Shown piece by piece: positions 9,325 to 43,548 of a stretch of DNA of 51,687 nucleotides (the stretch's first letter is position 1; every line of letters begins with the position of its first letter). A program made the translations under genes and the position numbers. Source of the stretch: Octopus bimaculoides (lineage: Eukaryota). The notes beneath the pieces are model-generated. The model saw only the letters and a program-made list of their open reading frames with translations, was not told the DNA's origin and did no database searches. Location: positions 29,598,147 through 29,649,833 of the forward strand of contig NC_068999.1 of assembly GCF_001194135.2 (NCBI RefSeq). Reading direction: 5' to 3'.

Positions 9325-9469
9325 CTGCATGAAAAAAAAAGAAGAAAAAATATTAAAACAAAATGTTAATATTGTTAACCTACCTGAGACCACACCACTG
9401 GTTCTATGACACAGACTGTTTTAAAGTGATCTAAATTATAAACTTAGATCACTGTTAGGCTGTTATGTA

Positions 9470-9505
<36 letters not shown>

Positions 9506-10256: not shown

Positions 10257-10639
10257 GCTCTCATGGCTCTGCCCCCACCACCAGTACTGGAAGTCTGTCC
10301 ACTGTACCAGAAGGCTCTCATAGCTCCAATCAGTAGTCTCATCCATGTTACTGCATGCAGTAAAGAGACTGCGTTACTTATTTAGTCAATTAACAAGCCT
10401 CCTATTTCCTTGTTACTTACAAATGAATTGACCAATTAGCTGTTTTATTTAATTACTTATCCTTTTACATTTGTATGAATAGTGCTTATATTAACACTTA
10501 TATTACATTACCTCCAATAGAGGCAGTGAATTTTTACATAAATGAATATTGATGGATTAATGCGAGAACAACTGATATGATATGTCTGTTTTCAGACGTT
10601 CATTGAAACCTTCTTTTCAGATGCTGACTGCCAAACCCG

Positions 10640-11483: not shown

Positions 11484-14400
11484 GGTTGATAAGGTAATCG
11501 AGGTAGTCAGAGTATGCGATAGAATACTTAAGATTGGATTAGTGCTATGGCATGGGCTAGCAACCATTATCTTGGCCTATGCTCCTCAGCCGGGGCTACC
11601 TGATGGACAGAAAGACTGATTTTATGACACCCTCTTGTAGACTACCTCATTGACGAATGACAGGGACCTTCTCTTTGTGGCTGGTGACTTCAATGGACAT
11701 GTTGGACAACATGTAGGGAGATTCCATGACATACATGGAGGCTATGGCTTTGGTTCCCACAATTGAGGGAACCAGGCTGCTAGAGTTCTGTGATGCAAAT
11801 GATCTTATGGTTTGCAATACTAACTTCAGGAAACCTGCCAGTCACCTAGTCACCTACCGTTCTGGCAGACACACTAGCTAAATTGACTAGATCCTCACCA
11901 GAAAAAGGGGAAGATGGCTGCTTATAAATGCCAAAACCTTCCCAGGTGAAGAATGTAACCCACAACATAAACTAGTAGTTAGCGACTTCAGGTTTAGGGC
12001 TAAATGGATGCCCAGAAGATGACCAGCATGGAGGAGAAGGGTCTGGAAGTTTAAAGATCCTGCGAATGGACAGAGATTTAGAGACATATTACTTGAAGCC
12101 TTTGACGAAATAGAGGGGGATATAGCATCACATGATGTGGAAGACAACTGGAGGTTTCTACGGGACAACCTGCTAAGGGCCACTGACCAGATCTGTGGAT
12201 GGTGCAAAGTCCACTCTCGACCCAAGGTAACGTGGTGGTGAAACAATGTTGTTGACAGGGCTATTAGACAAAAGAAACAGGTTTGGAACGACTGGAAGAA
12301 CGGTGGTAGCAGGGAATTGTATCAGGGAATTGTATATTTATTTAGTCAGAGGGGAAGCAGATAAAAAAAAAATTGCCAATGTTCTGCACCATGAGGACCA
12401 AAGACTTGAGGTATTTCGTGTTGTAAGACAGTGTGTGAGAGAGAATCGTGATGTTGTAGGAGAGAAATGTGTACACATGGATGATGGTTCACTTGCATTA
12501 AACGAGACTGCAAAGAGAGAGGTTTGGAGATGCCACTATGAACGGTTGCTCAATAAAGAGAATGAATAGGAGAAAGAGAGTCTGCTGAATGTCAACCCAA
12601 CACAGGGACCAGCTATCCGAATTGATAGTACCTTGGTAGAGAAAGTAATTAAGGGTATAAAGACAGGGAAAGCCCCTGGCCCATCAGGAATCACCGCGGA
12701 GATGCTCAAAATATCTGGTGGTGTTGGCTATAGCCTAGTCACCCATATAGTTAACCAGGTGATACACGAAGGAGTCATACCCAATGACTGGTGTAGCAGC
12801 ACCATTGTCAACTGCTACAAAGGTAAAGGTGACGCTTCAGATACAAATAATTATAGAGGTATCAAGTTGTTGGATCAGGTAATGATGGTCACGGAGAGGG
12901 TCATAGTCCAACTAATTAGGGAGAGAGTCAGTCTAGATGAAATGCAGTTTGGGTTCGTGCCAGGGAAAAGCACTACTAATGTTATATTTCTGGTAAGACA
13001 GCTGCAAGAGAAATACCTAGCCAAAGATAAACCTCTGTACCTGGCTTTCGTTGACATGGAGAAGGCCTTTGACAGGGTCCCCTGATCCTTTATCTGGTGG
13101 TCCCTGTACAGGGATGCTGACAGCAAAGTGAGGGTTGGCAACGAGTACAGTGAAGAATTCCGAGTAGGGGTAGGGGTCCACCAAAGATCAGTTCTCAGCC
13201 TCCTCTTATTCATCATAGCATTCCAGGCAATAACAGAGGAATTCAAGATAGGTTGCCCCTGGGAGCTCCTCTATGCTGATAACCTTGCTCTAATAGCTGA
13301 GTCACTATCAGAACTAGAGGAATAGTTTCAGGTGTGAAAGCAAGGATTAGAATCGAAGGACCTTAGAGTCAACCTAGCTAAAACCAAAGTCTTAATAAGT
13401 AGGAAGGCAGACAAACCACAAATCCCTTCAGGTAATTGGCCCTGCTCGATCTGTAGAAAAGGCGTATGTAGAAACTCCACAAGATGTGCCCAGTGTAAGC
13501 TATGGACTCATAAGAGGTGCAGCACTATCAAAGGGAGGCTAACTGGGAAGATAGTTTTTGTATGTGGCAAATGCTCAAGTGCTATAAACATTGAAAATGT
13601 GCAGAGAACAGCTTCTGTCACATTCCAGAGAGAAAAACTAGAAATAGTTAATAACTTCCGTTACCTAGGGGACCAAGTTAGTAGCAGGGGTGGATGCTCT
13701 GAAAGTCTAGCTGCTAGAATAAGAATAGCCTGGGCAAAGCTCAGAGAGCTCCTACCTCTGCTGGTGACAAAAGGGCTTGTCACTCAGAGTAAAAGGTAGA
13801 CTGTATGACGCATGTGCATGAACAGCTATGCTACATGGCAGTGAAACATGGGCTGTGACTGCTGAGGACATGCATAAGCTTGCAAGGAATGAAGCCAGTA
13901 TGCTCCACTGTATGTGTAATGTCAGTGTGCATACACAATAGAGTGTAAGTGCCTTGAGAGAAAAGTTGGATTTAAGAAGCATCAGATGTGGTGTGCAAGA
14001 GCGATGACTGCGCTGGTATGGTCATGTGTTGTGAATGAATGAGGATAGCTGTGCGAAAAAGTGTCACACCCTAGCAGTTGGAACCTGTGGAAGAGGTACA
14101 CCCAGGAAAACCTGGGATGAGGTGGTGAAGCATGACCTTCAAACATTGGGCCTTACCAAGGCAATGACAAGTGACCGAGACCTTTGGAGATATGCTGTGC
14201 TTGAGAAGACACAACAACCCAAGTGAGACCATAGCCCATGGCCTATGCCAGTGGGTGTAACCAGCCCACTTATGGATACCCCTCATACATTGGACAATAA
14301 ACTTTGCTTGTGAAAACCTATTGAGGCAAGTGAAATCAAAATCGCTGACGTGGTTGATCACAGGACTGCCTGATTGGCACTCGTGCCAGTGGAACGTTAA

Positions 14401-14765
14401 ACGCACATCTGAGCATGATCGTTGCCAGGGCAACGGATTGGCTGCTGTGCCGGTGACATGTGAAAAGCACCATTCGAGCATGATCGTTGCCAGCGTCGCC
14501 TTAAAGGCACATGTGTTGGTGGCACGTAAAAACACCTTTTGAGCGTGGCTGTTGCCAGAACCGCCTGACTGGCCCTCGTGCTGGTGGTATGTAAAAAGCA
14601 TCCACTACACTCTTGGAGACGTTGGTGTTAGGAAGGGCATCCAGCTGTAGAAACTTTGCCAGATCAGATTGAGCCTGATGCAGCCTCTGGCTCACCAGTC
14701 CCCAGTCAAACCGTCCAACCCATGCCAGCATGGAAAGTGGATGTTAAACGATGATGATGATGATG
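11484..14765 (+). mobile_element. RTE family A, inner nested copy (APE, RT, 3'UTR, (GAT)n)
   Basis: APE (VAGDFNGHVG) and RT (NYRGIKLLDQV, FVDMEKAFDRVP, ELLYADNLAL). Same 3'UTR as 2790-3293, with (GAT)n tail to 14765. Confidence 0.92.
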
Positions 14766-14767
14766 CT

Positions 14768-16504
14768 GAAAGCAACTGGGAGTTTCTGCAGGGCAGTTTG
14801 CTGGGGTGCCACAGACCAAATCTGTGGGTGGTGCAAAGTTCCAGTCAGACCTAGGGTGACGTGGTGGTGGAATGATGTAGACAATGCCATTAGAGCCAAG
14901 AAACAGGCCTTGAAGAATGGTGGTAGCAGAGATTTATACCTGATAGCTAGGAGGGAGGTTAGAAGACAGGTATACTAGCCAGGGGAGAAGCAGAAAGTGA
15001 GAAGTTTGTCAATGATCTATGATATGAGAACCAGAGGTTTGAAGTGTTTTGGATTGCAAGACAGTGTATCAGGGAAGACCATGATGTGGTAGGAGAGAAA
15101 TGTGTGCGCATGGATGATGACTCACTTGCAATTAGTGATTCTGAAAAGGAGGCTTAGAAATGCCACAATGAAAGGTTGCTAAATGTAGAGAATGCATGAG
15201 AGAAAGAGATCCTACCTAATGTGAACCCAACATAGGGCCTGGCTATCCGAATTAACAGTAGCTTAGTAGATAAAGCAATTAAGGATATGAAGACAGGGAA
15301 AGCCTATCAGGTATCAGCACTGAGATGCTTAAAATATCTGGCAGAGTGGAATATGACTTGGTTACCTGTATAGTTAATCAGGTTGTCCATGAAGGAGTCA
15401 TACTCAATGATTAGTGTAGCAGCATTTTAGTCAACTGCTACAAAGGTTAATGCTCTAGACAGAAATAATTACATCAAATTGCTGGAACAGGTGATGAAAG
15501 TTGCAGAAAGGGTCATAGCTTAGTTAATTAGGAAGAGAGCACAGATGAGATGCAATTTGGATCTGTGCCAGGGAGAAGCACCACTAATGCTATTTTCCTG
15601 GTGAGGCAACTGCAGGAGAAATAGTTGGCCAAAAATAAACCTCTGTATCTGGCTTTTGTTGACATGGAGAAAGTCTTTGACAAGGTCCCCCACTCCCTTA
15701 TCTAGTGAACAAGTAGGAGACCACCAGGGATCAGTTTTTAGCCCCCTTCTTGTTTATCTTAGTCCTCCAAGCTATAACTGACAAATTTAAGACAGGCTGT
15801 CCTTGGGGGCTCCTCTATGCTGATGACCTTGTTCTTATTGCTGTATCACTACCATAACTGGAGAAGGAAATTCAGGTCATCAGCATGGACTGCAAAGCAC
15901 GGACTGCAAAGCACGGACTGCAAAGACCAAAGTATTGATAAGTAGGAAAACAAATAAATCACAGATCCCTTTAGGGAGATGGTATTGCTTGATATGTACA
16001 AAAGGTGTTGAGTGAAACTCCATAAGGTGCACCCAGTGCAAGCTATGGATACATAAGGGGTGCAGCAGTATCACTGGAAGATTAACAGAGAAAGTAGTCT
16101 TTACATGTGGTAGCTGTGCAGGTACATTAAACACCAAGAATGTACAAAACATAGACTCTCTCAAATGTCAGTGGGGATCCTTAGAAGTAGTAGACAGTTT
16201 CCATTACTTAGGTGACCAAATTAGTAGTGGGGGTGGTTGTTCTGAAAGCATAGCTGCTAGAATAAGAATAGGCTGGGCAAAGTTCAGAGGGATACTACCT
16301 CANNNNNNNNNNNNNNNNNNNNNNNNNNNNNNNNNNNNNNNNNNNNNNNNNNNNNNNNNNNNNNNNNNNNNNNNNNNNNNNNNNNGAAGTAGTAGACAGT
16401 TTCCATTACTTAGGTGACCAAATTAGTAGTGGGGGTGGTTGTTCTGAAAGCATAGCTGCTAGAATAAGAATAGGCTGGGCAAAGTTCAGAGGGATACTAC
16501 CTCA
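14768..16504 (+). mobile_element. RTE family A, outer copy, 3' part (RT, internally deleted)
   Basis: Continues the frame of 10640-11483. LAFVDMEKVFDKVP and LLYADDLVL present. Confidence 0.85.
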
Positions 16505-16544
16505 AAAGGTTACCGTAAGCAAATTTAAAATACATACACAATAG

Positions 16545-16685
16545 GCTTCTTTTAGTTTCCACCTACCACATCCACTCACAGGGCTTTGGTTGGCCTGGAG
16601 CTATAGTGGAAGATGCTTCAGGTGCCTCACAGTGGAACTGAACTCAAGACCACATGATTGGGAAGCAAGCTACACAGCCACACCT
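16545..16685 (-). mobile_element. tRNA-derived SINE head (CORE-like family)
   Basis: Homologous to 26230-26360 (AAATCCACTCACAAGGCTTTGG...CTATAGTAGAAGA). Confidence 0.7.
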
Positions 16686-16979
16686 GTGTTTATGTCACAA
16701 TAATAATAACTATGCTAACATAACATCAGCTATTAGATTAATATAGCAAACATTGACCAGAATTGAAATATCAAATGTATTATTAATTGCAACTCTCATT
16801 CCTAAACTGGCAGACTGTAATACAGTCTGCAAGAAGAGAAACTTGCCTCAAATATGACAAAAATGCTAAATTTATATTTGAGAGAATTTTTCCATAACTA
16901 ATAAGGTTTACAAATTTAAAGTACTGTACAAACGCTACTAACTCCTTAAAAATACCTCCATTAGATAGATAAAAAAACT

Positions 16980-16996
16980 TTTATATATATATATAT

Positions 16997-17039
<43 letters not shown>

Positions 17040-17632
17040 AACACACATGCACGCACAGAAAACATACACATACACACACGCGCACATACAAAATACACAC
17101 ACACACGTACCCAACACCTACAACCCCACATAAACACGAACACACACACACACTCAAATAACCACCTGTTGACCTTCTACCTACACTGTCTATAGCGTCC
17201 ACNNNNNNNNNNNNNNNNNNNNNNNNNNNNNNNNNNNNNNNNNNNNNNNNNNNNNNNNNNNNNNNNNNNNNNNNNNNNNNNNNNNNNNNNNNNNNNNNNN
17301 NNNNNNNNNNNNNNNNNNNNNNNNNNNNNNNNNNNNNNNNNNNNNNNNNNNNNNNNNNNNNNNNNNNNNNNNNNNNNNNNNNNNNNNNNNNNNNNNNNNN
17401 NNNNNNNNNNNNNNNNNNNNNNNNNNNNNNNNNNNNNNNNNNNNNNNNNNNNNNNNNNNNNNNNNNNNNNNNNNNNNNNNNNNNNNNNNNNNNNNNNNNN
17501 NNNNNNNNNNNNNNNNNNNNNNNNNNNNNNNNNNNNNNNNNNNNNNNNNNNNNNNNNNNNNNNNNNNNNNNNNNNNNNNNNNNNNNNNNNNNNNNNNNNN
17601 NNNNNNNNNNNNNNNNNNNNNNNNNNNNNNNN

Positions 17633-17695
<63 letters not shown>
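16980..17695. repeat. (TA)n(CA)n and (GA)n microsatellites flanking an N gap
   Basis: Read directly. Confidence 0.9.
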
Positions 17696-18039
17696 AGAAA
17701 AAAGGACAAGAAAAATGATTTAAAATAATAGCAAAATGCATTCAATTATTGAATAAAATAACAGAAAAATCAATTCACTTTTCAACAATACTAGAACTGA
17801 CAGAACTGTATATAACCAAACTACACAGATAAGGCATATATGTATATACATACACCTAAAGCTCTATGAGAGAATTTGGTAGACAGAAACTGAAAGAAAC
17901 CCATCATGTAAATATATATTGCTTGCTAACTGAGATCTACAAATATTGAAGTTATACTAACTGCTTTCTTTCCCTCTCTTAAATATTACATACTTAAGAG
18001 AAAGAACATCCATTTGATGTTTCACCAATGCAATCCATT

Positions 18040-18725
18040 ATCAACATTTAACATCTGTTGTTCATGTTGGCACAGGTTGGACAGTTTGACCAGGGCTGGC
18101 AAGCTGAGGGGCTGCACCAGACTCCAGTCTGATTTTGCATGGTTTCTACAGCTAGATGCCCTTCTTAATGCTAACCACTCTGAGAGTGTAATGAGTGCTT
18201 TTACATGCTACTGGCACAAGTGCTAGTTGCGTGATACTAGTATCTGCCATGACTAGAATTTCACTTGATTTGATGGGACTTCTACTGAAGCATGGCATAT
18301 TGTCAATTGTCTCGGTCATTTGTCATTGCCTCCATGAGGCTCAACGCTTGAAAGGTGCTTTTTACATGCCACTGGCACAGGTGCTAGTTACGTGACACTG
18401 GCATCGGCCACATTGCCTTTGTGAGGCCCAAAGTTTGAAAGGTGCTTATACGTGCCACCAACACAGGTGCCAGTTACACAACACCTGCCTTGGCCACATT
18501 GCCTACGTGAGGCCTAATGCTTAAAAGGTACTTTTTACATGCCACCTGCATGGGTACCAGTTATGTGACACTGGTATCAGCCACAACTATGATTTCATTT
18601 GGCTTGACAGGTCTTCTCAAGCATGGCATATTGCCAAAGGTCTCAATCACTAATCAGTGCCTCCATGAGGCCCAACGTTTGAAGATCATGCTTCACTACC
18701 TTGTCCCGTGTCTTCCTGAGGCCAG
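18040..18725 (-). mobile_element. 5'-truncated RTE family A 3' end with amplified 3'UTR subrepeats
   Basis: Reverse complement gives the RT C-terminus (RKTRDKVVKHDLQTLGL) and repeated GGCA(C/T)GTAAAAAGCAC modules. Confidence 0.8.
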
Positions 18726-19234
18726 GAGTACAGTTTTTTTCCTTTGGAATGTATTAACATCCACACAATATGTACTTATATAAGTGTTTGCAATCCATTT
18801 TCTCACTCATAATTCATTTGAGGCCAAGAATATAGTTTTTCTTTCAGAATATATGCATGTATTCAAGCATTATATTGTCTGAAGTAGAAAAGCCTTCAAG
18901 CATTATCTTCTCACTCCATAGTAAGTTATTTGAGCCACTCAGAGATTTACAGACACCCATCTCTATTTTTCCATCCCCTTTCTACTACTAGAAGTACATG
19001 ATATCACCCAATGCAGCCTATTATTATTTTTTTATTTTATTTACCTGGCCTTCAATTTTTAAGGATCTGAGTGAATGGGGGTTCAGCTGAACAGTAGTAA
19101 TATATCTGTGTAGCTGATAATGTGCAAGAGCAGTTTGCTCACAGGCAAACTTTCCTGTAAACTTCTTTTTCAGCTGCTGAAATCTATGCTGCAGTTCCCT
19201 ACTCACTTTTACCATCTAGTCCACATCCTTAGGG

Positions 19235-30163: not shown

Positions 30164-30314
30164 GAGCAAAGCTTCATGTCAGGAACTTTAAATTATAGTA
30201 TCCAAGTGAGTAGATATTAATTGAAGTGTGGTATACAGTTCTATATTTAAGAGAAGAGGTATTATGTACATTATTTACATTTGACGGATATTTGTCCTCA
30301 TCTTGTTTATTGTG

Positions 30315-30360
30315 AGCACAATGTTTCGGCTGATATACCCTCCAGCCCTCTTCAAGTGTC
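30315..30360 (-). ncRNA. Degenerate minimal hammerhead ribozyme (PLE family 1)
   Basis: GACAC-UUGAAGA-G-GGCUG(10)CAGCC-GAAA-CA-UU-GUGC; C3 is mutated. Confidence 0.6.
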
Positions 30361-32031
30361 TTGGGGAAATTTCGAACCTGGGTTCTCTTTCCTAAGGTAT
30401 TTTTCGATGTTATTATTATTATTATTGTTGTTCAGGTCACTGCTTGGAATCTAACTTGGAATCTTGGGGTTAGTAGCCTGCACTCTTAACCACTACGTCA
30501 TATGCCCATGGGCAATTATGGAGTAAATTTTAGGGCTTATAAATTTAATATTCTCCTATCCTTCCTTAATACCGGTTCCCATATGCTGTTCATATCTGCA
30601 CTCAGTCTGCTTAGGAGGTTGTTGTGTTCTAGCATATGTGCTGCTTCATTTAGTTTTCGTATTTTCCAGTGGTGTTCTCTGTCTATTGTTTTAACTTCAT
30701 CCCACAGGGGGATGTGGTCTCCATTTTTCCATACATGATCAGCTTTACCCAATTTATCAATATCTCCTCATGTCACACCTTTGCAATGTTCATCTACCAT
30801 TATTTTGAGGGGGTGGCATGTTTCGCCTTTGTATAACCTACCACAGCTGCATGGAATGGAGTACACACAGTTTTTGGTCATATTCTCTTCTATTGGTGGT
30901 TTTACTCGAAGGAGATATTTGCAAAGTGTTGTATTATTCTTGAATACTGTCCTGATGTCATATGGACTGCATATCTTTTGTATCTTTTTGGGGAGAGGCC
31001 TTTCACATAGAGTAGACAGACTGTGGACAGTTTATTGGCCTCATCCTCTCTCTTCTTCATAATTGGAGTGGATAGTATACTTTTGGGATAGTTGTTGCTT
31101 AAGAGATCGTTATTGAGCTTGATCATTTCTTTATGGTGTGTATCACGATCGCTACTTATATTCTTTGNNNNNNNNNNNNNNNNNNNNNNNNNNNNNNNNN
31201 NNNNNNNNNNNNNNNNNNNNNNNNNNNNNNNNNNNNNNNNNNNNNNNNNNNNNNNNNNNNNNNNNNNNNNNNNNNNNNNNNNNNNNNNNNNNNNNNNNNN
31301 NNNNNNNNNNNNNNNNNNNNNNNNNNNNNNNNNNNNNNNNNNNNNNNNNNNNNNNNNNNNNNNNNNNNNNNNNNNNNNNNNNNNNNNNNNNNNNNNNNNN
31401 NNNNNNNNNNNNNNNNNNNNNNNNNNNNNNNNNNNNNNNNNNNNNNNNNNNNNNNNNNNNNNNNNNNNNNNNNNNNNNNNNNNNNNNNNNNNNNNNNNNN
31501 NNNNNNNNNNNNNNNNNNNNNNNNNNNNNNNNNNNNNNNNNNNNNNNNNNNNNNNNNNNNNNNNNNNNNNNNNNNNNNNNNNNNNNNNNNNNNNNNNNNN
31601 NNNNNNNNNNNNNNNNNNNNNNNNNNNNNNNNNNNNNNNNNNNNNNNNNNNNNNNNNNNNNNNNNNNNNNNNNNNNNNNNNNNNNNNNNNNNNNNNNNNN
31701 NNNNNNNNNNNNNNNNNNNNNNNNNNNNNNNNNNNNNNNNNNNNNNNNNNNNNNNNNNNNNNNNNNNNNNNNNNNNNNNNNNNNNNNNGCTGATCATGTA
31801 TGGAAAAATGGAGACCACATCCCCCTGTGGGATGAAGTTAAAACAATAGACAGAGAACACCACTGGAAAATACGAAAACTAAATGAAGCAGCACATATGC
31901 TAGGACACAACAACCTCCTAAGCAGACCGAGTGCAGATATGAGCAGCATATGGGAACCGTTATTAAGGAAGGATAGAAAAATATTAGAATTATAAGCCCT
32001 GAAATTCACTCCATAATTGCGCACGGGCATA

Positions 32032-32086: not shown

Positions 32087-32177
32087 AAGCAGTGACCTGA
32101 ATAATAATAGTAGTAATAGTAATAATAACATCGAAAAATACCTTAGGAAAGAGAACCCAGGTTTGAAATTTTCCCAA

Positions 32178-32223
32178 GACACCTGAAGAAGGCTGGAGGA
32201 TATATCAGCCGTAACGTTGTCTT
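32178..32223 (+). ncRNA. Minimal hammerhead ribozyme copy (A13U), retaining the ACGU palindrome
   Basis: GACAC-CUGAAGA-A-GGCUG(10)CAGCC-GUAA-CG-UU-GUCUU. Confidence 0.65.
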
Positions 32224-34104
32224 AACAACAAACAAGATGAGGACAAATGTAAATAATGAAGTGTGGTATGTCTGTGTTTAATCAGTGGTACTGGAGTGTT
32301 TAGATAGTTAGGAATTTGATAAGCCAAAAGGGAAGATGATTCAGTGAAAGAAGCTTGCTTAAAAAGATATGGAGTCTAGGTATTTGTAGACATAACTAAG
32401 CCATGTTAAAGGAAATACATTAGAAACTGAGAAAGCAGCTAAATTTCTCGTGTCTAGATATTAGTTTACACTCCCTTCTTGTTCTCTAATAACTAAGAAT
32501 GCTGGATAATTTCTCTCAATTAAACACTGAGAGTTGAACTGTGTGTCAGCAGGAAATCCCACAAGAATACCAATATTAAAGAATTTTATAGAGGAAGTCA
32601 TGTCTACATCCAGCAGATATTAACTTTTTACATTTTGAAATCTTTGAATTCTCCAGAAAAGCTGTTACAAATCAATATATAGAATAACATCAGGACAAAT
32701 TCTAAAAGGGTTATGGATGTCGCCAAATGAATTTGATATCAGACAGCATAGTTCTCCTTTTAAAGCTAACAAGTAAAACTTAGCCAAAATGTATGTTATG
32801 AAAGAAAGAAATATATAATCAATTTGATGGTGGTGCCTCAGCAAGGCTACAACTCAAAGGCTGCAGCTGTTAAAAGTCTACTTGGTTTAGTTCTTCTCAG
32901 ACATCAGAGTCTCAACTGCAAGAAAAGGACTTTTTATTATCAGTCAAAATAATTGATTCATGAACTTTGGTTCCTGAATAATTCCAGACACTAGAATTAA
33001 CAGAATTATAAAGAAAGAGATATATAATTATTAACTGGACATGCTTGGTATTGGCTTTACTGATTTTTTATAACTAAACATTACTATGTGATATCAATTG
33101 TAACTTAGAGCTAGGACTTATTGATGGACACAGTCTACCATTCCATCATCAATAATCACAACATGACTATATCAGCAACAACAACATTATCACCTCATCA
33201 ACAACACTAATACCACATTTTCATAATGATAGGATCAGCGACAAATCCTGCTTCCTACTACCACCAAATCAGCAACACTAACTAATCAATCAGTGGTTTA
33301 AAACTGGGGGAAAAAAATGAACTGGTGATGTTTATTTATACAGCTAGTAAGTCAACCATCAACAATACAATGACCATGAACACCAATAACACAACCACAA
33401 CTATGAATATCATGATCAGCAACACTGACATTTGTCTATTAAAAATCAATTAGAAGTTTAAAATTGTTTGGTAAAAGAATAAACTAATCACTGGATGTAA
33501 GAGATGTAATACAACCACCAGTAACATAGACACCATCACCATAACAACAGTTCAATGTGGAATGACATCACTGAGGGAGAAGTGTGTGTGTGTGTATAAT
33601 GAGTATTAGTGNNNNNNNNNNNNNNNNNNNNNNNNNNNNNNNNNNNNNNNNNNNNNNNNNNNNNNNNNNNNNNNNNNNNNNNNNNNNNNNNNNNNNNNNN
33701 NNNNNNNNNNNNNNNNNNNNNNNNNNNNNNNNNNNNNNNNNNNNNNNNNNNNNNNNNNNNNNNNNNNNNNNNNNNNNNNNNNNNNNNNNNNNNNNNNNNN
33801 NNNNNNNNNNNNNNNNNNNNNNNNNNNTATATATATATATAGATATGGGTATATAATGAGTATTAGTGTTATTATTTACTCGATTAAGTAGCAAGCTAGG
33901 AGAATTATTTGAACACCGGAGAAGTACTTTGCAGCATTTATTCCTATACTTAACATTTTGAGTCAAATTTCTGTCACGGTCAACTTTAACATTTACCCCT
34001 CTGGGGTTGATAAAATATACTAACATTCAAGTATTTGAGTTGATGCTATCAATTAACTTCAATCTCATGCCAAAATATGAAATGATAAAATAAAAAACAA
34101 ACAA

Positions 34105-34283: not shown

Positions 34284-35428
34284 ATAGAGTTCTATATTTA
34301 AGAGATAAGGAATTATGTACATTATTTATATTTGACGGATATTTGTCCTCATCTTGTTTGTTGTTAACACAACTAAATAAAGCCATCCATACAGTTCATA
34401 TTGGAAAAGGGAAAAAGGAAAAAGACAATCAGCCAGCATTCCTAGACATATCAAAAACATGCACCAAGTATGGATTCAGGACATCCGTATACCACAAGCC
34501 GACCTTCTCTGGACGATACCTCAACTTCAATTCCCACCATCCATACAGTGTAAAGAGAGGATTAATAACAATCTATTAAGCAACAACTCAATAAAAATCT
34601 ATTAAGCAACAACTACCCCCAAAAATATACTATCCTCTCCAATTATAAAGAAAAGAGAGGCTAAAACCAATAAACTATCCACAGTCTGTCTACCCTATGT
34701 GAAAGGCCTCTCCGAAAAGATACAATAGATATGCAGCCCATATGACATCAGGACAGTATTCAAGTGTAATACAACACTTCGCAAATATTTCCTTCGAGTA
34801 AAACCACCAATAAAAGAGAACATGACCAAAGACTGCGTGTACTCCATACCATGCAGCTGTAGCCGGTTATACAAAGGTGAAACATGTCGCCCCCTCAAAA
34901 TAATGGTAGATGAACATCGCAAAGCTGTGACATGAGGAGATATTGATAAATCAGGTATAGCTGATCATGCATGGAAAAATGGAGACCGCCTCCCCCTATG
35001 GGATGAAGTTAAAATAATAGATAGAGAACACCTCTGGAAAATACGAAAACTAAATGAAGCAGCACATATGCTAGGACACAACAACCTTCTAAGCAGACTG
35101 AGTGTAGATATGACTAGCATATGGGAACTGGTATTAAGGAAGGATAGGAAAATATTAGACTTATAAGCCCTAAAATTCACTCCATAATTGCCCACGGGCA
35201 TATGGTGTAGTGGTTAAGAGTGCAGGCTACTAACCCCAAGATTCTGAGTTTAATTCCAGGCAGTGACGCGAATAATAATATTAATAACATCAAAAAATAC
35301 CCTAGGAATGAGAAACCAGTTTTGAAATTTTCTCAAGACACCTGATGAAGGCTGGAGGGTATATCAGCCAAAATGTTGTGTTAACAACAAACAAGATGAG
35401 GACAAATCCGTCAAATGTAAATAATGTA
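34284..35428 (+). mobile_element. Penelope-like element insertion 2: inverted tail, RT C-terminus, GIY-YIG and pLTR
   Basis: FLDI...VYHKPTFSGRYLNFNSHHPYSVK, VCLPYVKGLSEKI, and DCVYSIPCSCSRLYKGETCRPLK...EHRK. Inverted tail at 34288-34373. 16-bp TSD CATTATTATTATTATA at 34268-34283 and 35429-35444. Confidence 0.9.
35337..35382 (+). ncRNA. Hammerhead copy with CpG-type mutations (G12A, C15.2U)
   Basis: GACAC-CUGAUGA-A-GGCUG(10)CAGCC-AAAA-UG-UU-GUGUU. Confidence 0.6.
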
Positions 35429-36864: not shown

Positions 36865-37558
36865 AACAACACAAAGAAATAGAGGATACAGTAGACATGG
36901 CAAATGATTGGTTACAGCTGCAGTAGGTGTAGTTTTACAGCAAACTGTACTTTCAGAGGGACTTAATACCTAAGGTGGTGGATGCTAAGTGATGGAAGGG
37001 TGTGGTTAGGAAGGACAAAATGTTTAGTAGGGTGTAAAAAAATACGTTTCTTGGTGAGAGTGGTTGAACAGTTTGGAGGAAGACTGTGAGGTTCATATAA
37101 GGGAACAGTTATTACAGTGATTGACATGCAAGAAAACAACCTATCATAAGATGACAAATACGCATGGTGTTACAATTATACTGCTAGACTTGTAATTGGA
37201 TAGTTAAATAATTAAAGCTATAAATTAGTAAATGTGATTGGATAATTATAATCAACCTCAGCATCAACATTATCAAAGTGTCACAAGTATGTTGGATTTT
37301 ATAACCACAGTTTTAATAAGTTGCCAAGAAAAAGGAATAATGATAGAAAAAGAATACCTGTTCAGTCAAGAATGAGACAACCTCCAAGAGGTCTGTCAAA
37401 TTTCAAAAGTAGCAGTCAAATTCCCTCAAATCCATACCCTATAGTTTTAAAAGGACACAATAGGCAACGTAATCCTAGATATGTGTAAGAGTGGTGGTCA
37501 CAACTGGAATATCTTTATTTACATTTGATGGATATTTGTTCTCATCTTGTTTGTTGTC

Positions 37559-37604
37559 AACACAACTTTTCGGCTGATATAACCCCCAGCCTTCATCAGG
37601 TGTC
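37559..37604 (-). ncRNA. Hammerhead copy, core intact, C15.2A
   Basis: GACAC-CUGAUGA-A-GGCUG(10)CAGCC-GAAA-AG-UU-GUGUU. Confidence 0.7.
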
Positions 37605-37663
37605 TTGGGGAAATTTCAAACCTGGGTTTTCATTCCTAAGGTATTTTTCTATGTTGTTGTTAA

Positions 37664-37824: not shown

Positions 37825-37884
<60 letters not shown>

Positions 37885-37936
37885 CAACCTCGAAAAATAC
37901 CTTAGGAATGAGAACCCAGGTTCGAAATTTTCCCAA

Positions 37937-37982
37937 GACACCTGATGAAGGATGGAGGATATATCATCCGAAACATTGTGTT
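37937..37982 (+). ncRNA. Hammerhead copy, core intact, with compensatory stem II change
   Basis: GACAC-CUGAUGA-A-GGAUG(10)CAUCC-GAAA-CA-UU-GUGUU. Confidence 0.75.
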
Positions 37983-38519
37983 AACAACAAACAAGATGAG
38001 GATAAATATCCATCAAATGTAAATAATGCACATAATTCCTCATCTCTTAAATATAGAACTGTGGAATATCTTTGATCATTAGTCCGATGAATTACAGCTG
38101 ACCAGGGGCTAAACAATAACCAATTTTCTATTTGGTCAGTATATGTCATTAAAGGAATTATAGGGTTAAATTAAGCCCAGGTTAAAGAGTAAGTATGAGA
38201 TTAGCTTAAACTAAAAAATAAACCAACAGAACCTCCCTCTTCTCCCCCACCCCTCACACACTGAGAAACAAAATATTCTAAGTCTAATCCAGTTTGAAGC
38301 TTGCTTAAAAAGAATCTAGATTAGATAAAAAAAAAAAAAAAATTACATTTATCAATTATTTCATACAAGAAAGAATAGAATATTAGTCAAACATTTGATG
38401 TGTTGTAGACACTCATCACCTTCACTTTTAGATGGCTTTCTTCTGGGAAGTTAGCAATGATTCATATGTTATTTATGGAGTGAAAACCGAATAGGATTGT
38501 TATCTACATAACCTAATTA

Positions 38520-38950: not shown

Positions 38951-40657
38951 ACAAATGATGAGATACTGTATTGGACAAGATCTAGAGCATTCAAAATTAA
39001 AAATTTCTTCAGTTAGGTCAATGATAGCACCAGAATAATTTTATCTTCAAATCTAATTATAATCAAATTAATCAATCATATATCAGAATATTTCTGAACT
39101 ACAATTCCTACAGAGAACATTTCAACTAGGTTCCACACTTCACCAATCCTCTATACAATCAAAACACTATGTGCTCGCTTGGGTTATTTCTATATCATCA
39201 GGTTACATTTATATTAAATCAATTTATATTAAGTCAATGATACTAATTACGTAGCATACCAGTGAACCAATTGTATATAAGTATACATCTTTAGAATTGC
39301 TCTAAATCCAAAATATTTGCTACAGATAGGTAAATATTCTTCTTGTGTGTGTGTGTACATGAGTGAGTCATTCAAGACCATGGGTGATGCAAACTATTAT
39401 GACAGCTTTTCTATAGTAGAAACAAGATGTTAGTTGGTTACTACTATCTTTGTAAATTCCTCCAGGATGGAATGCTATTTCATTGCAAGAATAATTCCCA
39501 GCTGTTGATGATGGAACTAATTTTCAGTTGAGTGAACAGGAGCAAGATAAATACAAGGACACAATGTGCAGCCCAGTCCAGCAATCAAATGCATGACCAT
39601 GTAATTGTGAGCCCAGCAGCCAAATAACTTGTTCAACAGCCTTCACTATAAAAAATTAATTCATATTCTGTCCTCTATGATGCAGTTCATCTTTCTTTGG
39701 AGTTAATATGTTGTCCATATCAGGGATATTTTCCTATTAGTTATTATCTTACCTCTGAAGAGGCTTGCTCATTCTACTTGAACAAAGCAATAGTATAGTG
39801 ACAAAAGCATTGACTAAGTGTCAAGCTTTAGGTTTGTTGGCTTACCTGATTGGTGCAAGTTCAAGTTGTAGGTCAGTTAATCTATACTCAGGGTTCAAGT
39901 GGAGTGAACATCACAAGTAAGAGAATAACTAATAGGAGAATACTCCTGATACAGAGAAAAGAATAAAACAATCTACCTTATAAGATTGAATAATGGGTTT
40001 GATATGAAATTCCAGGATCAATATAACTGAATATGACAAGTAACTAAAGAAAGGAGGTACAACTGTTGAAATGTTGCAACTATAACAACCAAGGACACTA
40101 GTCCAAATATATCTGTATATAATAAGAATAATTACTCATCCTGTAAAAATTCAGACAAATATTCTTCAGAGTTGCCTGGAACTGAATAGGTGTAGGCATG
40201 ACTGTGTGGATAAGAAGTTCACTTTCAAACTATACAGTCTCAAGGTTGATCCTACTGTGAAGCACCTAGGTTTAGTGTCTTCTAGTGGGTTGACTAAAAC
40301 CTTGAGAGTGAAATTTGTTTGACAGAAAGTGTGTCGAGACCCATCAAAGGTGATTGACCCTATTTTCAGGCCATATCTCCGGTCTGATAAAGCCTTACCT
40401 CCTCTGGGTATATATATGTGTGTGTGCATGTGTGCATACACAAACACACACATATATATTAAAAAAAATTATAAAACATCTAAAAATATACAGCGATGGT
40501 TTGTTACCAATTTAATGTGGCAGTCCCAGGAAAGGGAAGAATGTTACTACTATTTGGCCTCAAGAAACACTGTTTCTAGTTGGTTATGTGACACAAGTGC
40601 TGTGTTCTTAAGTTTTCAAACAGAGGAGATAAGCATCTCCATCCAACAAAACCAGCA

Positions 40658-40700
40658 CCCAGAGACTAGTTTTAGGGTAGATGCTCTTCATCAGTCTGGA
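40658..40700 (-). ncRNA. Type I minimal hammerhead HH-b (G12A, stem II mismatch)
   Basis: UCCAGA-CUGAUGA-AGAG(CAUCUA)CCCU-AAAA-C-UA-GUC-UCUGGG; stem I fully paired. Confidence 0.7.
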
Positions 40701-40967
40701 GTAGCTTGGCTTTGCTAGCTTTGTTCTTTATTATGAGCACATTGGCTCTTACAAAGAAGGGATGAACAAAGACAGACAACACAATACTGTGGGGTACATA
40801 AAACATAAATCGAATGAATATAATGATATAATGAAAAATGAAATGTCTTATCTGCACCCCACATGCAGGTACTGTCATTTAACTGTTTATGTAACACATA
40901 TTCATGAACAGTTCATTGTTCTTCTTTTTTTAAAAGATTATTTTAATTTTACAAATTCCACTTACTT

Positions 40968-42246
40968 TCAATTGACTAAGTACTCCACTATGTCTTCAAA
41001 TGGCACCACTGGTGGTAGTTCATTGCATCGAACCCACAACTCCGATAATAAAATTTGTTCATCAAACAATTCTTTTAATCTTTCTATTTTCTCTCTCTCT
41101 AGCAAAACTGCCCTGTCATCTTCAGTATGCTCCATTCCCGACAATTTCACTCTGATTATGTTTTTCATTTTAGTGATCCGCTTCTCTATTTCTATGCTCT
41201 TTTTATATCCTATCATCATCCTCACATTTTTTCCTTTTGGTACTCCTTCCTGCTTTCTATCTCTATTCTCTCCCGATGTTCCTGTTTTTTGTGTCTTAAC
41301 CATCTCTATCTCACACTTACTCTTTATTGTTGCTTCCTTTCCTTTCTGCATACTTTTTTTGTGGGCTTTTTGGTGGTGAATATGCATTTTCATCTCTTTT
41401 CTTTTTTCTTTTACCAACTAAATATTTTTCTTCTACGTTTTCCATCTCTTCACTTACTTGGCTTTGTGCTACCACTCCTTGTTCCACCTCCTACTCCTGC
41501 AGCTCCTGTTCTACTTCTTGTTTCTGGGGACACCTTGCTTGTATGTGTCTCCGTACTCCACAGTGGTAACAGATGGGAGGTCTTCCTTCCACTACCACTC
41601 TTAATTTAACATCCTCTGGCAACATAATTTCATCTACAATTTTATGCAGGTCCGGCAAACTGATTTGGACTGTCACCTCAAGGCTGTATCCAAACCAGTT
41701 TACCTCTGTTGTCCTCGTTACCTTCAGCACATTGGTCTCCTTCTCTGCGTTGAAGAGGATGGCTGCCACCAGCCATGTTTCATCGATTTCTGGGGGCACT
41801 CTGCCAATCTTAATTCTGGCTGCACGTTTACCACAGTAGGCTGGCAGCAGTGCCCACTCTTCTGGCCTCAATGGCACAGTGGAGTACTTTATTGCATCTT
41901 GTTTGGTTGCAAACTGTATCTCCACTGTGCCGTACTTCTTGCCTCTGGTGTAGTATGTCGTAAGGTGCTTCATATCCTTAAGACACTCCTCCATTGCTTC
42001 AATGGTTGCTATTTCCACCCTTTTGCTTGAGTTTGATAGCATTCTATACACAACAGTATTTTTCGCTGTTTCCTCCATTACGTCTTTTGGCAGTGTTAGC
42101 CTCAGGCTACTTCCTTCCTTAACTATAAGTTCATTCACCTTTTTCAATCTCCTCTCACTGAACTTCACTTCTTTAACTTGCAAAACATCATTATCCCAAC
42201 CCCTTCCTGTTGCTGCATCATAGCTGAAGGCTGGTTGGGTCTCCAT
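40968..42246 (-). pseudogene. Gag/ORF1-like nucleic-acid-binding protein (RRM-like region, CCHC knuckle, charged tail; about 426 codons), disrupted
   Basis: ATG at 42246. RVVVEGRPPICYHCGVRRHIQARC is a CX2CX4HX4C knuckle typical of L1/Tx1-type ORF1p. In-frame TAG at 41491-41493, then KRKKKR...SPPKSP, a probable frameshift near 41310-41350, and an end at TAA 40968. Confidence 0.78.
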
Positions 42247-42264
42247 AACATTGTTGCTTTACAC

Positions 42265-42448
42265 CTGTCACAAATGACAAGAATATTTCCAGAAAATATA
42301 TTCGCAAAAATCACAGTTCACAATAAAAATAAATGAAAATATTTCTACCCCACAGGGCAAAAAATACTGTTTTTCAAAGGACAACAGTTCAATATTTCAT
42401 TTCAAAATAACATAAATTTACAATAAACAGAACAGGAAATGAACTCAC
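42265..42448 (-). other. Candidate 184-nt spliceosomal intron in the element 5'UTR
   Basis: GTGAGT donor at 42448, T-rich body, and TTTGTGACAG/G acceptor ending at 42265, 18 nt before the ATG. Confidence 0.6.
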
Positions 42449-42804
42449 ATACTGCAGGTAACAAACTGAAGACAACAATGTGCCACAGACAAAAAGGCAT
42501 GGCCTTGCTAGCTGTCGGTGCTAGATCACTGTTGAAACTTATAGAATTTCAAGTGAAATAAATTCACTGATCTACGAAATTAGAAATATTGAATTTCTAA
42601 ATCTCTCAAAGAGAGTTATGCAGTAGCAGCATGATAAAGTGATGGTTTGTTGCCAACCTAATTGCGGCAGTTCCAGAAAAGGGAAGAATGCTACTGCTAT
42701 TTAGCCCCAAGAAACACCGTTTCTAGTTGGCTATGTGACAAGCGTTCTGTGTCCTTAAGTTTTCAAACAGGGGAGATAAGCACCTCCACCCAACAAAACC
42801 AACA

Positions 42805-42847
42805 TCCAGAGACTAGTTTCAGGGTAGTTGCCCTTCATCAGTTTGGA
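42805..42847 (-). ncRNA. Type I minimal hammerhead HH-a, catalytic core intact
   Basis: UCCAAA-CUGAUGA-AGGG(CAACUA)CCCU-GAAA-C-UA-GUC-UCUGGA. Palindromic ACUAGU in P3, one stem I mismatch, predicted cut between 42811 and 42810. Confidence 0.82.
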
Positions 42848-43548
42848 GTAGCAGTGTTTCTTGGGGTTAAATAGCAGTAGCATTCTTCCTTTTCCTAGGA
42901 CTGCCACATTAAATTGGCAACAAACCATCACTTTATCATGCTGCTACTGTATAACTCTCTCTGAGAGATTTAGAAATGCAATATTTCTAATCTATAAATA
43001 TGTTTAACAGGAATTTTATAAGCTAAACTGATCTTTGGTCAAACTAGATGTTTAGGATGAATTTCAAGAAAGAATTAAAACTATTTTCAGTAAGGATGTT
43101 TGCGAATGGTTTAGAAAAAAGTATAAACTATACAAATATGTACTGGAATAAGTTGTTAGGAACAGTACTTTACAATGTTGGTGTTGCCCCAGCATGGCTA
43201 CATTCCTGGTGGTATAGTGTTAAATTACACATACACAACAATGCATTTTAAGATCATCATCTACATATAATTGCAGTTACTTATTGATATTAGAATGGCA
43301 AAGGACTGGTTTGATACTAATAAAACACTTGTATAACACTAAATGTACAAGCACACATACATATAACAATTATTAATACATTAGTCAAATGCAGCTGCAT
43401 CAAATAGTGTAAGGGTGGGTTACCAGGAGAGACAGTATTATTCCCCTTGCATTATAATTGAGAAAATAGAGGAAACTATCAAGATATGTAACCACAGAGT
43501 ACATCTTGAAGAATTCATAATGGTAGTAGCAGGGTTAATAATAATAAT

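Follow-up and report, generated by a model that had tools for sequence, protein, structure and literature searches.

Terminons (Athena PLEs) are hammerhead-bearing retroelements with extra ORFs, which are giant, telomere-associated and equipped with an RT of their own. Canonical EN+ PLEs are characterized by hammerhead pseudo-LTRs (pLTRs), an inverted 5'-truncated copy beside the upstream repeat, a tail confined to one end and a TSD of variable length (PMC8557442; PMC4209133). Additional ORF1s are known from several PLE clades, and in Chlamys-2_cBra a canonical hammerhead is accompanied by an upstream zf-CCHC ORF (Craig et al., 2021; PMC8557442). Non-LTR retrozymes consist of non-coding units of ~170-400 nt in tandem, occur in many genomic copies and are expressed as circular RNAs. 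They are related to PLE pLTRs (bioRxiv 10.64898/2026.07.22.740005). In molluscs, their units measure ~350-390 bp, are low in GC and highly self-paired, and their type-I hammerheads exhibit a helix III of 1-2 bp with a palindromic loop cap (PMC7229834; PMC4209133). Among LINEs, the mammalian HAL1 elements form a multi-copy family with L1 3' ends and poly(A), which keeps the L1 5'UTR, ORF1 and 3'UTR, is devoid of ORF2 and needs ORF2p in trans (Bao and Jurka, 2010, as summarized in PMC5753468). L1-Tx1 and Penelope families are both reported to have been recently active in O. vulgaris (PMC13282606).

Here, we describe a locus of Octopus bimaculoides that combines features of several of these systems. 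Within a stretch of 51,687 nt (contig NC_068999.1, positions 29,598,147 to 29,649,833; hereafter, the window, to which all coordinates refer), a hammerhead-bounded element occupies 40478-43001 on the minus strand and is located in an intron of the octopus WTAP gene. The initial annotation proposed that a LINE-type gene had been captured between PLE-type ribozyme repeats and was moved as a family by a helper PLE RT. Our analysis instead favors, with a probability of roughly 0.55, two unrelated non-autonomous retroelements that became nested in two separate events.

Outer architecture of the insertion

Along the minus strand, an inverted fragment is followed by a direct repeat that has a type-I hammerhead core at its start, a broken ORF, an AATAAA signal, a second repeat and the TSD. 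The outer TSD is represented by ATATTTATAGAT at its 5' copy (42990-43001(-)) and ATATTTTTAGAT at its 3' copy (40478-40489(-)), which agree at 11 of 12 positions, and both flanks are also found in O. sinensis. The direct repeat (40488-40705 and 42634-42852) comprises ~218 nt, its copies being 88% identical. Its upstream copy belongs to hammerhead unit A (42497-42852(-); 356 nt, GC 0.41), which is composed of the pLTR (42634-42852), a 55-nt tail (42579-42633) and 82 nt containing a 17-mer; unit B, the 3' pLTR (40490-40705(-)), ends before the tail. The inverted 5'-truncated copy of the unit (42853-42991(+), 139-145 nt) takes in the tail. In reverse-complement orientation, the entire inverted segment (42847-42991) corresponds to 42579-42724, with arms I1 and I3 that are 94% and 85% complementary, respectively. 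The tail is present at one end of the outer element only, and all parts of a PLE-type insertion (pLTR direct repeats, inverted 5'-truncated copy, one-end tail and TSD) are found here, in the arrangement drawn for PLEs by Craig et al. (2021; Fig. 2 legend, PMC8557442).

The repeats, the hammerhead and the AATAAA between two TSD copies, as well as the assignment of the repeats to the PLE/retrozyme type, were thus correctly recognized from the start. The same applies to the absence of RT and endonuclease: no match to an RT or GIY-YIG domain was obtained in Pfam scans of the ORFs or by tblastn with a LINE ORF2 RT over the 2.5 kb of the element, no endonuclease was found in it, and its 2.5 kb are wholly assigned to repeats, ORF and UTRs. 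The GT of a candidate 5'UTR intron is not kept in O. sinensis. The element differs from PLEs, whose autonomous members encode a telomerase-like RT with or without a GIY-YIG endonuclease, in encoding neither RT nor GIY-YIG and in carrying an ORF of LINE (L1/Tx1) rather than PLE ORF1 descent. Unlike Terminons, it is neither giant nor telomere-associated and encodes no RT.

The hammerhead motif

Both repeats carry a type-I hammerhead motif, which was identified with hand descriptors. The 5' copy (42800-42851(-)) has an intact core, CTGATGA..GAAACTAGTC, at 42811-42841(-), with CUGAUGA, stem II AGGG/CCCU and its loop CAACUA, GAAA, C17 at 42811 and a helix III consisting of an A-U pair capped by the palindromic loop CUAG. 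All type-I core positions are accounted for, namely C3-A9 (CUGAUGA), G12-A14 (GAA), the A15.1-U16.1 pair and an H17 that is not G. The 3' copy (40653-40704(-), core 40664-40694(-)) has stem II AGAG/CCCU and 5/5 bp in stem I; its GAAA, which is kept in the O. sinensis orthologue, is changed to AAAA (G12>A), a substitution that, judged from the sequence, inactivates the core in O. bimaculoides. In each species, one copy has a full core with C17 (5' in O. bimaculoides, 3' in O. sinensis), the O. sinensis 5' copy carrying A9>C. Among the four copies of the two species, helix I shows 5/5 bp in three and 4/5 in the O. bimaculoides 5' copy; helix II has 4 bp in this copy and an A.C mismatch in the remaining three. 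The pair 10.1-11.1 is A-U instead of the highly conserved G10.1-C11.1.

With a generic descriptor that required the core, a stem II of ≥3 bp and a palindromic tetraloop, one match was obtained in the window vs. 0.04 per shuffle. No Rfam hammerhead model matched, either at the gathering threshold or at E ≤ 10 with the 2.9-kb or the 76-nt query, and the hammerhead call is consequently based on the hand descriptors. Scanning metagenomes for the hammerhead gave no hits.

The ORF1 module and its LINE relatives

Between the two hammerhead repeats lies an ORF2-less, L1/Tx1-type module of 1776 nt (40721-42496(-)), which consists of a 5'UTR (42247-42496), ORF1 (40968-42246) and a 3'UTR (40721-40967) and shares the orientation of the hammerheads. 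ORF1 had been described as a reading frame of about 426 codons. Its length is close to this value (~424 codons), but the frame is broken: an N-terminal part of 251 codons (41491-42246(-)) ends at an in-frame TAG, which is O. bimaculoides-specific (GAG in O. sinensis), and the C-terminal part of 149 codons (40968-41417(-), +1 frame) is accessible only through a subsequent frameshift. The N-terminal part contains two RRM-like domains and a CX2CX4HX4C knuckle, which is sub-threshold in Pfam although the pattern is exact; its AF2 model (pLDDT 90.7) matches tandem-RRM proteins. The C-terminal part comprises a basic linker and a conserved C-terminal domain, matches locus L003 in tblastn and ends in an ...L..FP.DVG-type C-terminus common to ORF1 and the proteins P0003, P0009, P0026, P0033, and P0124. 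Homologues of ORF1 fall into 520 representative clusters at E ≤ 1e-3, and those looked up were mostly from Octopus.

In the loci L004 (O. vulgaris) and L002 (O. sinensis), a homologous ORF1 is located directly upstream of an ORF2 with Exo_endo_phos, RVT_1 and zf-RVT domains. The octopus ORF2 matches human LINE-1 ORF2p with E = 2e-71. ORF1 is 33-39% identical to its counterparts in L002 and L004 and 33-57% identical across the relatives examined; assembly gaps break up the closer relatives, L003 and L005. The proposed L1/Tx1-type affiliation is supported by both the tandem-RRM match and the position of the homologues upstream of APE+RT ORF2s. With its two RRM folds, single CCHC knuckle, basic linker and conserved C-terminal domain, ORF1 is a true L1/Tx1-clade ORF1p, and the module departs from L1/Tx1 LINEs in that no ORF2 follows.

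The 3' end of the module resembles that of the full-length LINEs. The 3'UTR is 247 nt long here vs. 241 and 250 nt there, and its last ~75 nt are colinear with those of L002 and L004. The UTR similarities to the full-length LINEs are weak and barely exceed those of shuffles (z = 1.6-3.2). The AATAAA (40727-40732(-)) lies 6 nt before the module end, and the module and the full-length LINEs all terminate within ~10 nt of this signal. A clear poly(A) tail is missing from the module; a long A-run occurs in the L004 LINE, though possibly in its 5'UTR. In retaining 5'UTR, ORF1 and 3'UTR in the absence of ORF2, the module is comparable to HAL1 as summarized in PMC5753468, from which it differs in being present in one copy, in having no clear poly(A) and in an ORF2 loss that may have occurred after insertion.

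These relatives bear on one alternative, in which the locus would be a deletion derivative of an autonomous PLE that carried an ORF1 and an RT-GIY-YIG ORF between its repeats. The existence of PLE clades with an ORF1, and in particular of Chlamys-2_cBra with its zf-CCHC ORF and canonical hammerhead (PMC8557442), lends this scenario some plausibility and also shows that the premise of PLEs without gag, on which the initial annotation relied, was too strong. However, the readable relatives in L002 and L004 precede an L1-type APE+RT ORF2 and not a PLE RT, no RT or GIY-YIG remnant lies in the 247 nt that separate the ORF1 stop from the repeat, and the module is flanked by a 17-nt repeat of its own. 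A derivation from a PLE by deletion thus appears highly improbable.

Module junctions and the unit without the module

The module is flanked by a 17-nt direct repeat, with AGCTAGCAAGGCCATGC as its 5' copy (42497-42513(-)) and AGCTAGCAAAGCCAAGC as its 3' copy (40704-40720(-)), which agree at 15/17 positions and may represent the TSD of a nested insertion. The junctions read ...GCCATGC|CTTTTTGTCTG and ...AATAAAGAACAA|AGCTAGC...TACTCC..CTGATGA, so that the 3' copy is situated immediately after AATAAAGAACAA and immediately before the hammerhead, where it abuts the start of unit B. In a post hoc test with the 5'UTR as search space, the score of this repeat was reached by 7 of 2000 shuffles; over the whole internal region it was reached by 100 of 500, which is not significant. 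The weight of the repeat therefore lies in its place at the junction of module and hammerhead repeat and not in statistics over the whole internal region.

Once the module is taken out, a 356-nt hammerhead unit remains, which folds at -107.3 kcal/mol compared with -85.3 +/- 5.4 for shuffles (z = -4.1). In this fold, the 17-mer pairs with GGUUUUGUUGGG and makes the closing 12-bp helix. In total, ~1.6 tandem units plus the inverted fragment are present, and no homology to the repeat was found in the rest of the window or in loci L002-L006 (~140 kb in total). Because the unit was seen just once, it can be regarded as putatively retrozyme-like from its size, fold and hammerhead type only. Several properties are shared with metazoan non-LTR retrozymes (PMC7229834): the type-I hammerhead with a 4-bp helix II, a 1-bp helix III and a palindromic loop, where ACUAGU can form a dimeric helix III; a size similar to the ~350-390 bp of mussel units, with low GC and strongly self-paired RNA; and the head-to-tail partial tandem, a TSD of more than 4 bp and the occurrence of PLEs in the same host. 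Differences consist in the ~1.6 units with an inverted fragment, the interruption by a 1.8-kb coding module, the single occurrence, the A-U pair at 10.1-11.1 instead of G-C and the lack of an Rfam hammerhead match. To within 2 nt, unit A begins at the unit position that marks the 3' edge of the 17-mer, an agreement that two independent events leave unexplained.

The junctions also bear on a second alternative, a single-event chimeric cDNA, in which a PLE-type RT, engaged on retrozyme or PLE RNA at this target, would have switched to a LINE ORF1 RNA and back, yielding a product that was made once, at this locus, and never gave rise to a family. Template switching is thought to produce the tandem and inverted arrangements of PLEs (Craig et al., 2021; PMC8557442), and a single outer TSD around everything, a module without poly(A) tail and the unequal similarity of the three hammerhead-unit copies, which hints at more than one template, would fit such an origin. 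Nevertheless, template switching could account for 17 nt repeated on either side of the module only if 15-17 nt of a third RNA had been copied abortively, and the module has apparently complete LINE-like ends, unlike an arbitrary switch point. We consider a chimeric cDNA improbable.

The O. sinensis orthologue and the age of the insertion

The same insertion is present in O. sinensis, where the syntenic locus is 91-92% identical over ~20 kb, and the copies of both species are decayed. Among 5.8 billion protein clusters, the O. sinensis orthologue is the sole protein more than 60% identical to either ORF half, and searches of annotated and predicted proteins yielded no close paralogue. Since no close relative was found besides this orthologue, nothing indicates an amplification, and the idea of a multi-copy family was not substantiated. 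All six disabling lesions are lineage-specific, and hence the ORF was free of disabling lesions at the species split. By then, the two hammerhead copies were separated by 4 substitutions and 2 indels in ~205 nt. The contrast between a lesion-free ORF and diverged repeats is a weak indication (roughly 4-10x) that the module is younger than the repeats. The dN/dS values of 0.67 and 0.46 are derived from 80 differences and are barely off neutrality. The hammerhead-unit copies are not equally similar to each other: at 2-3 sites, the inverted copy agrees with the 3' copy and differs from the 5' copy.

Mobile composite or nested insertion

The initial proposal can be restated as a third alternative, in which the composite of hammerhead repeat, ORF1 module and hammerhead repeat would itself be mobile, as a protein-coding retrozyme or a PLE satellite. 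In this scenario, a half-LINE would have inserted into a master retrozyme or non-autonomous PLE, the resulting 2.15-kb unit would have been transcribed and the transcript copied by a helper PLE RT/GIY-YIG, the product being an insertion of 1.1 units that includes an inverted fragment and is bounded by a 12-bp TSD. Several observations point in this direction: the outer architecture and TSD enclose the whole composite, and the module occupies the only stretch of the unit (275-356) that spares the hammerhead and the 3' region and has the same orientation as the hammerhead. Furthermore, a start of unit A at the 3' edge of the 17-mer is what a full-length transcript would naturally yield at its 5' end, no disabling lesion common to both species was present in the ORF at the split and the dN/dS values lie below 1. 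There are also precedents both for non-autonomous PLEs that resemble autonomous ones at their 3' ends only and for a PLE with a zf-CCHC ORF (PMC8557442). On the other hand, no second copy was found among the protein clusters, where the orthologue alone exceeds 60% identity, nor was a related repeat found in ~190 kb of octopus sequence. The ancestral hammerhead would have had a weak stem II, given the A.C mismatch in three of four copies and the A-U pair at 10.1-11.1, and the dN/dS estimates lie near neutrality. In a genome reported to consist of ~66% repeats, TEs insert into one another very frequently, and the prior hence also favors nesting. Mobility of the composite is therefore unlikely, and slightly more doubtful still is its specific form, a retrozyme or non-autonomous PLE with an acquired LINE ORF1 chaperone gene that would be expressed from the hammerhead repeat and reverse-transcribed by a helper PLE RT.

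The nested insertion is considered the likeliest reading because the module has its own 17-nt repeat, ends near an AATAAA and leaves a retrozyme-sized unit upon removal. The same repeat and the LINE-like 3' end speak against a gene that was captured and moved as a family by a helper PLE RT. The refuting scenario named in the initial annotation, an L1/Tx1 piece between hammerhead repeats, accommodates both features and is at present somewhat better than an even bet, with the order and independence of the two events, the enzymes responsible and the retrozyme nature of the 356-nt unit being inferred. In a first event, a small hammerhead repeat, built of a 356-nt unit and belonging to the metazoan retrozyme or PLE-pLTR kind, would have inserted into the WTAP intron. 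This would have yielded ~1.6 tandem units with an inverted 5'-truncated fragment inside a 12-bp TSD, marks that would be the signature of PLE-type target-primed reverse transcription. In a second event, an L1/Tx1 half-LINE with 5'UTR, ORF1 and 3'UTR would have inserted just upstream of the second hammerhead and duplicated 17 bp. This half-LINE may have been ORF2-less on insertion or may have lost ORF2 soon after, and its ORF1 product, a LINE RNA chaperone, would have depended on ORF2p in trans. Both events would predate the split of O. bimaculoides and O. sinensis, since which the locus has decayed almost neutrally; it probably does nothing today.

If the elements are nested, the locus represents routine TE stratigraphy and gives reason for caution, as direct repeats around a gene can pass a nested insertion off as a captured gene. 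Its two components would still be of interest: neither a cephalopod retrozyme-like repeat that combines a canonical-style type-I hammerhead with PLE-type integration marks nor a cephalopod ORF2-less L1/Tx1 half-LINE was found in the literature searched. Were the composite multi-copy, it would indicate that a LINE RNA-chaperone gene can travel and multiply within PLE-mobilized ribozyme elements, which would be a new kind of cross-class retroelement chimera. A truly mobile composite would be the first protein-coding animal retrozyme and a hybrid of LINE and PLE lineages. In O. sinensis, the decayed ORF has given rise to a RefSeq gene model, LOC118767225.

Overall Organization of the Element

The element at 43001-40478 of the minus strand is most likely the product of two nested insertions, a reading to which we assign a probability of roughly 0.55. 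In minus-strand order, it comprises an outer 12-mer ATATTTATAGAT starting at 43001, an inverted segment of 139-145 nt (the reverse complement of 42579-42724), a first direct repeat of ~218 nt (42852-42634), an internal region with a long, broken reading frame, an AATAAA signal at 40732-40727, the second direct repeat (40705-40488; copies 88% identical) and the 3' outer 12-mer ATATTTTTAGAT, which ends at 40478 and matches ATATTTATAGAT at 11 of 12 positions. This confirms the anatomy described in the initial annotation, i.e., a target-site duplication (TSD), an inverted segment, direct repeats with a hammerhead motif, an ORF and an AATAAA on the minus strand. The outer element carries integration marks of Penelope-like elements (PLEs), as an inverted, 5'-truncated copy adjoins the upstream repeat and the TSD surrounds the whole. 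The inverted copy runs 55 nt beyond the end point of the 3' repeat, which is the counterpart of the one-ended tail reported for PLEs (PMC8557442). A tRNA-like head was not found in the element. The 3' TSD is adjoined by a palindromic (TA/TG)n microsatellite (window 40408-40463), whose mir-297/mir-466-like Rfam matches (40 bits vs a gathering score of 90) were rejected as chance similarity of low-complexity sequence.

A hammerhead-like motif is located ~10 nt inside the 5' edge of each direct repeat. In the 5' copy, the sequence is CUGAUGA-AGGG-CAACUA-CCCU-GAA-A-CUAG-U-C; the UCUGG that comes next pairs with CCAAA/CCAGA on the 5' side of the core. The 3' copy carries AAAA in place of GAAA. Helix III consists of a single A-U pair capped by CUAG and ACUAGU is therefore a perfect 6-nt palindrome, a form known from dimer-cleaving type-I hammerheads of animals (PMC4209133; PMC7229834). 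An independent descriptor that was not built from this sequence (the core, 3 bp or more in stem II and a palindromic tetraloop of any sequence) yielded one match in the 51.7-kb window vs 0.04 per shuffle. Rfam hammerhead models gave no match at any of three sensitivities and stem II opens with an A-U pair in place of the usual G10.1-C11.1. Consequently, the motif is graded, from its sequence, as a plausible but divergent hammerhead, a call made with hand descriptors. A metagenome scan for the hammerhead returned nothing.

The Reading Frame Encodes an L1/Tx1-Type ORF1p

The N-terminal frame extends over 251 codons (41491-42246) before an in-frame TAG, after which a frameshift leads into a 149-codon ORF (40968-41417). 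A word-indexed protein search gave just two related proteins; the family surfaced with an exhaustive HMMER search of representative clusters, of which 520 matched at E<=1e-3 and 161 at E<=1e-10. The cluster members that were looked up are mostly proteins of Octopus sinensis, O. bimaculoides and O. vulgaris. At an O. vulgaris locus (L004), the homologous ORF1 is followed, after a gap of 6 nt, by a 1132-aa ORF2 with Exo_endo_phos, RVT_1 and zf-RVT domains (E = 2e-71 vs human LINE-1 ORF2p), and an O. sinensis locus (L002) shows the same order of ORF1 and ORF2. Two further octopus loci (L003, L005) have N gaps exactly where ORF2 or a repeat would fall, and most O. bimaculoides relatives are known as UniProt entries without contigs.

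The AlphaFold2 model of the 251-aa part (pLDDT 90.7) identifies the region first described as RRM-like as a tandem RRM, its best structural matches being the tandem-RRM proteins IMP3 RRM12, Sxl, hnRNP A1 UP1 and SFPQ. The knuckle CYHCGVRRHIQARC follows the pattern CX2CX4HX4C and the C-terminal ORF has a motif common to full-length family members. Together with the ORF2 context of the relatives, these features establish the ORF as a bona fide L1/Tx1-clade ORF1p, and the initial guess of this identity is thus borne out by homologues that precede an L1-type ORF2 in both L002 and L004. As the readable relatives carry L1-type ORF2s, it is highly improbable that the element is a deletion derivative of a PLE that itself bore ORF1. 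The candidate 5'UTR intron found no support, its GT being absent at the matching O. sinensis position.

The full-length L1/Tx1-type LINEs of O. vulgaris form a head-to-tail tandem array (L004:~4950-19200) with a period of ~5.28 kb. The O. sinensis copy (L002:9700-15385) has (ATT)n on either side, which suggests microsatellite-targeted insertion. The window itself contains unrelated LINE fragments with RVT_1 and endonuclease-like ORFs on the plus strand (1185-1874, 4236-4598, 5503-5973, 6121-6831 and 12633-13085), several N gaps and many microsatellites.

An Orthologous Insertion in O. sinensis

The sole protein with more than 60% identity to either ORF half is O. sinensis LOC118767225. The locus of this protein (L001) shares synteny with the window (~91-92% identity over ~20 kb); the insertion and its flanks are present there as well, within a gene annotated as WTAP. 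In the window, a large exon-like WTAP ORF with a long poly-Asp/Glu tract is found at 8102-9310(-) and is 99% identical to the Wtap-domain protein P0152. The element is therefore located in a WTAP intron in sense orientation.

The orthologues differ by indels of 1, 13, 76 and 2 nt and by two stop codons. Under one assignment of lesion states, an uninterrupted frame of 424 codons is obtained; hence, no disabling lesion is common to both. The dN/dS values between them, 0.67 for the N-terminal and 0.46 for the C-terminal part, are based on 80 differences and are close to neutral. The RefSeq model LOC118767225 (P0001; L001:10001-10616) starts after the 1-nt frameshift and splices out the 76-nt lineage-specific insertion as an “intron,” and probably represents an artefact of annotation, derived from a decayed ORF1 pseudogene. 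By the time the two species separated, 4 substitutions and 2 indels in ~205 nt distinguished the 5' hammerhead repeat from the 3' one, and the chance that a 1.27-kb ORF stays intact over that interval under neutrality is estimated at roughly 0.1-0.25. Since the repeats had diverged by then while the ORF had no common lesion, it is weakly favored that the ORF module (40721-42496(-), comprising 5'UTR, ORF1 and 3'UTR) is younger than the repeats.

The 3' repeat of the window (40490-40705) has 15 lineage-specific substitutions, compared to 4-5 each in the window 5', O. sinensis 5' and O. sinensis 3' copies. On the hammerhead strand, eight of its 14 typed substitutions read G>A, mostly at non-CpG sites, a pattern suggestive of gene conversion or local hypermutation. 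A complex indel unique to O. sinensis is present at L001:11991-12053 (window ~39808-39828). Here, 21 nt have given way to 46-48 nt copied from the module/hammerhead junction ~870 nt upstream, including O. sinensis's own 14-nt deletion, and fused to 17 nt that exactly duplicate sequence 38 nt upstream. A new 5'-truncated retro-insertion of the junction copy (L001:11991-12036) was rejected because of the 21 replaced nucleotides and the attached nearby 17-nt copy; the indel resembles a product of templated break repair more than one of retrotransposition.

Module Boundaries and a Probable Nested Insertion

Distinct boundaries delimit the ORF module. A 17-mer AGCTAGCAAGGCCATGC at 42513-42497 is repeated as AGCTAGCAAAGCCAAGC at 40720-40704, where it is preceded by AATAAAGAACAA and directly followed by TACTCC..CUGAUGA of the second hammerhead. 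In a post hoc test against the 42 nt that precede the repeat, an equally good match arose in only 7 of 2000 shuffles of the 387-nt 5'UTR search space. With the whole internal region as search space, 100 of 500 shuffles matched as well, and the weight of the 17-mer therefore lies in its position. A single chimeric cDNA generated by template switching would not naturally produce a duplication that flanks the module on both sides, making such an origin clearly improbable.

Removal of the 1776 nt between the 17-mers and of one 17-mer leaves a unit of 356 nt (42852-42497; GC 0.41). Its fold reaches -107 kcal/mol vs -85 +/- 5 for shuffles (z = -4.1) and is closed by a 12-bp helix between the 17-mer and the sequence immediately 3' of the hammerhead. 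Mussel retrozyme units are similarly ~350-390 bp long, low in GC and highly self-paired (PMC7229834). A second copy of the unit was not seen in the window or the compared octopus loci (L002-L006), and blastn and tblastn of the element against these loci returned ORF similarity only, without pseudo-LTR (pLTR) or hammerhead.

The module 3'UTR (247 nt) resembles those of the full-length L002 and L004 LINEs in length (241 and 250 nt); its last ~75 nt are colinear with them and all three end within ~10 nt of an AATAAA. Under soft scoring, the 3'UTR similarity barely exceeds that of shuffles (z = 1.6 and 3.2) and the 5'UTR has no significant similarity to LINE UTRs, while stringent local alignment of module and LINE UTRs was not significant. 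On these alignments, UTR homology to full-length LINEs is no more than suggestive.

In the nested scenario, a retrozyme/PLE-type hammerhead repeat would have been inserted through PLE-type target-primed reverse transcription, and an ORF2-less L1/Tx1 LINE would then have landed in it with a 17-bp TSD. Insertion of a full-length LINE with ORF2 lost soon after would have the same outcome. A model for such a “half-LINE” is mammalian HAL1 (cited in PMC5753468); the module likewise is ORF2-less. The nested reading is weakened by the lack of a poly(A) tail on the module, by the post hoc nature of the 17-mer test and by the failure to find the 356-nt unit a second time in the window or L002-L006. Moreover, the 5' end of the upstream hammerhead unit (42497-42852(-)) and the 3' edge of the 17-mer fall on the same unit position within 2 nt, a coincidence that two independent events do not explain. 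It would fit mobilization of the whole composite as a single unit by the reverse transcriptase of a helper PLE, as would the late decay of the ORF and a module position that spares both hammerheads. However, no second copy of such a composite was found in protein searches, the window or L002-L006, and the prior for nesting is high in a genome reported as ~66% repeats; we thus regard this composite as rather unlikely, and the reading as a protein-coding retrozyme as unlikely. L1-Tx1 and Penelope families are both reported as recently active in O. vulgaris (PMC13282606) and helpers therefore exist for either route.

Of the initial interpretation, the identities of the hammerhead repeats and the L1/Tx1 ORF1p stand, whereas the capture of the gene between the repeats and its mobilization by a helper are not supported, as the module's own boundaries correspond to the L1/Tx1 insertion that the annotation itself had named as counting against capture. 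All parts of the nested element are of known kinds, namely retrozyme/PLE-type hammerhead repeats, L1/Tx1 ORF1p and half-LINEs. The premise of absolute novelty was too strong even for the capture model, given the precedent of the green alga PLE Chlamys-2_cBra, which bears a hammerhead and a gag-like zf-CCHC ORF (PMC8557442).

A Second Hammerhead-Like Repeat Family

A second repeat family of ~150 nt with a different hammerhead-like core occurs in both orientations, at window 30270-30408(-), 32121-32248(+), 35283-35425(+), 37515-37661(-) and 37880-38027(+). An O. sinensis copy is located at L001:15040-15180(-) (GAAACAUGUU, with the palindrome ACAUGU). Stem I pairing was not found for this candidate hammerhead. 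Its core, CUGAUGA-A-GGCUG...CAGCC-GAAAC-AUUGUG, shares with PLE min-hammerheads an additional nucleotide following A9 as well as the G10.1-C11.1 pair, and the copies may represent remains of pLTRs from octopus PLEs.
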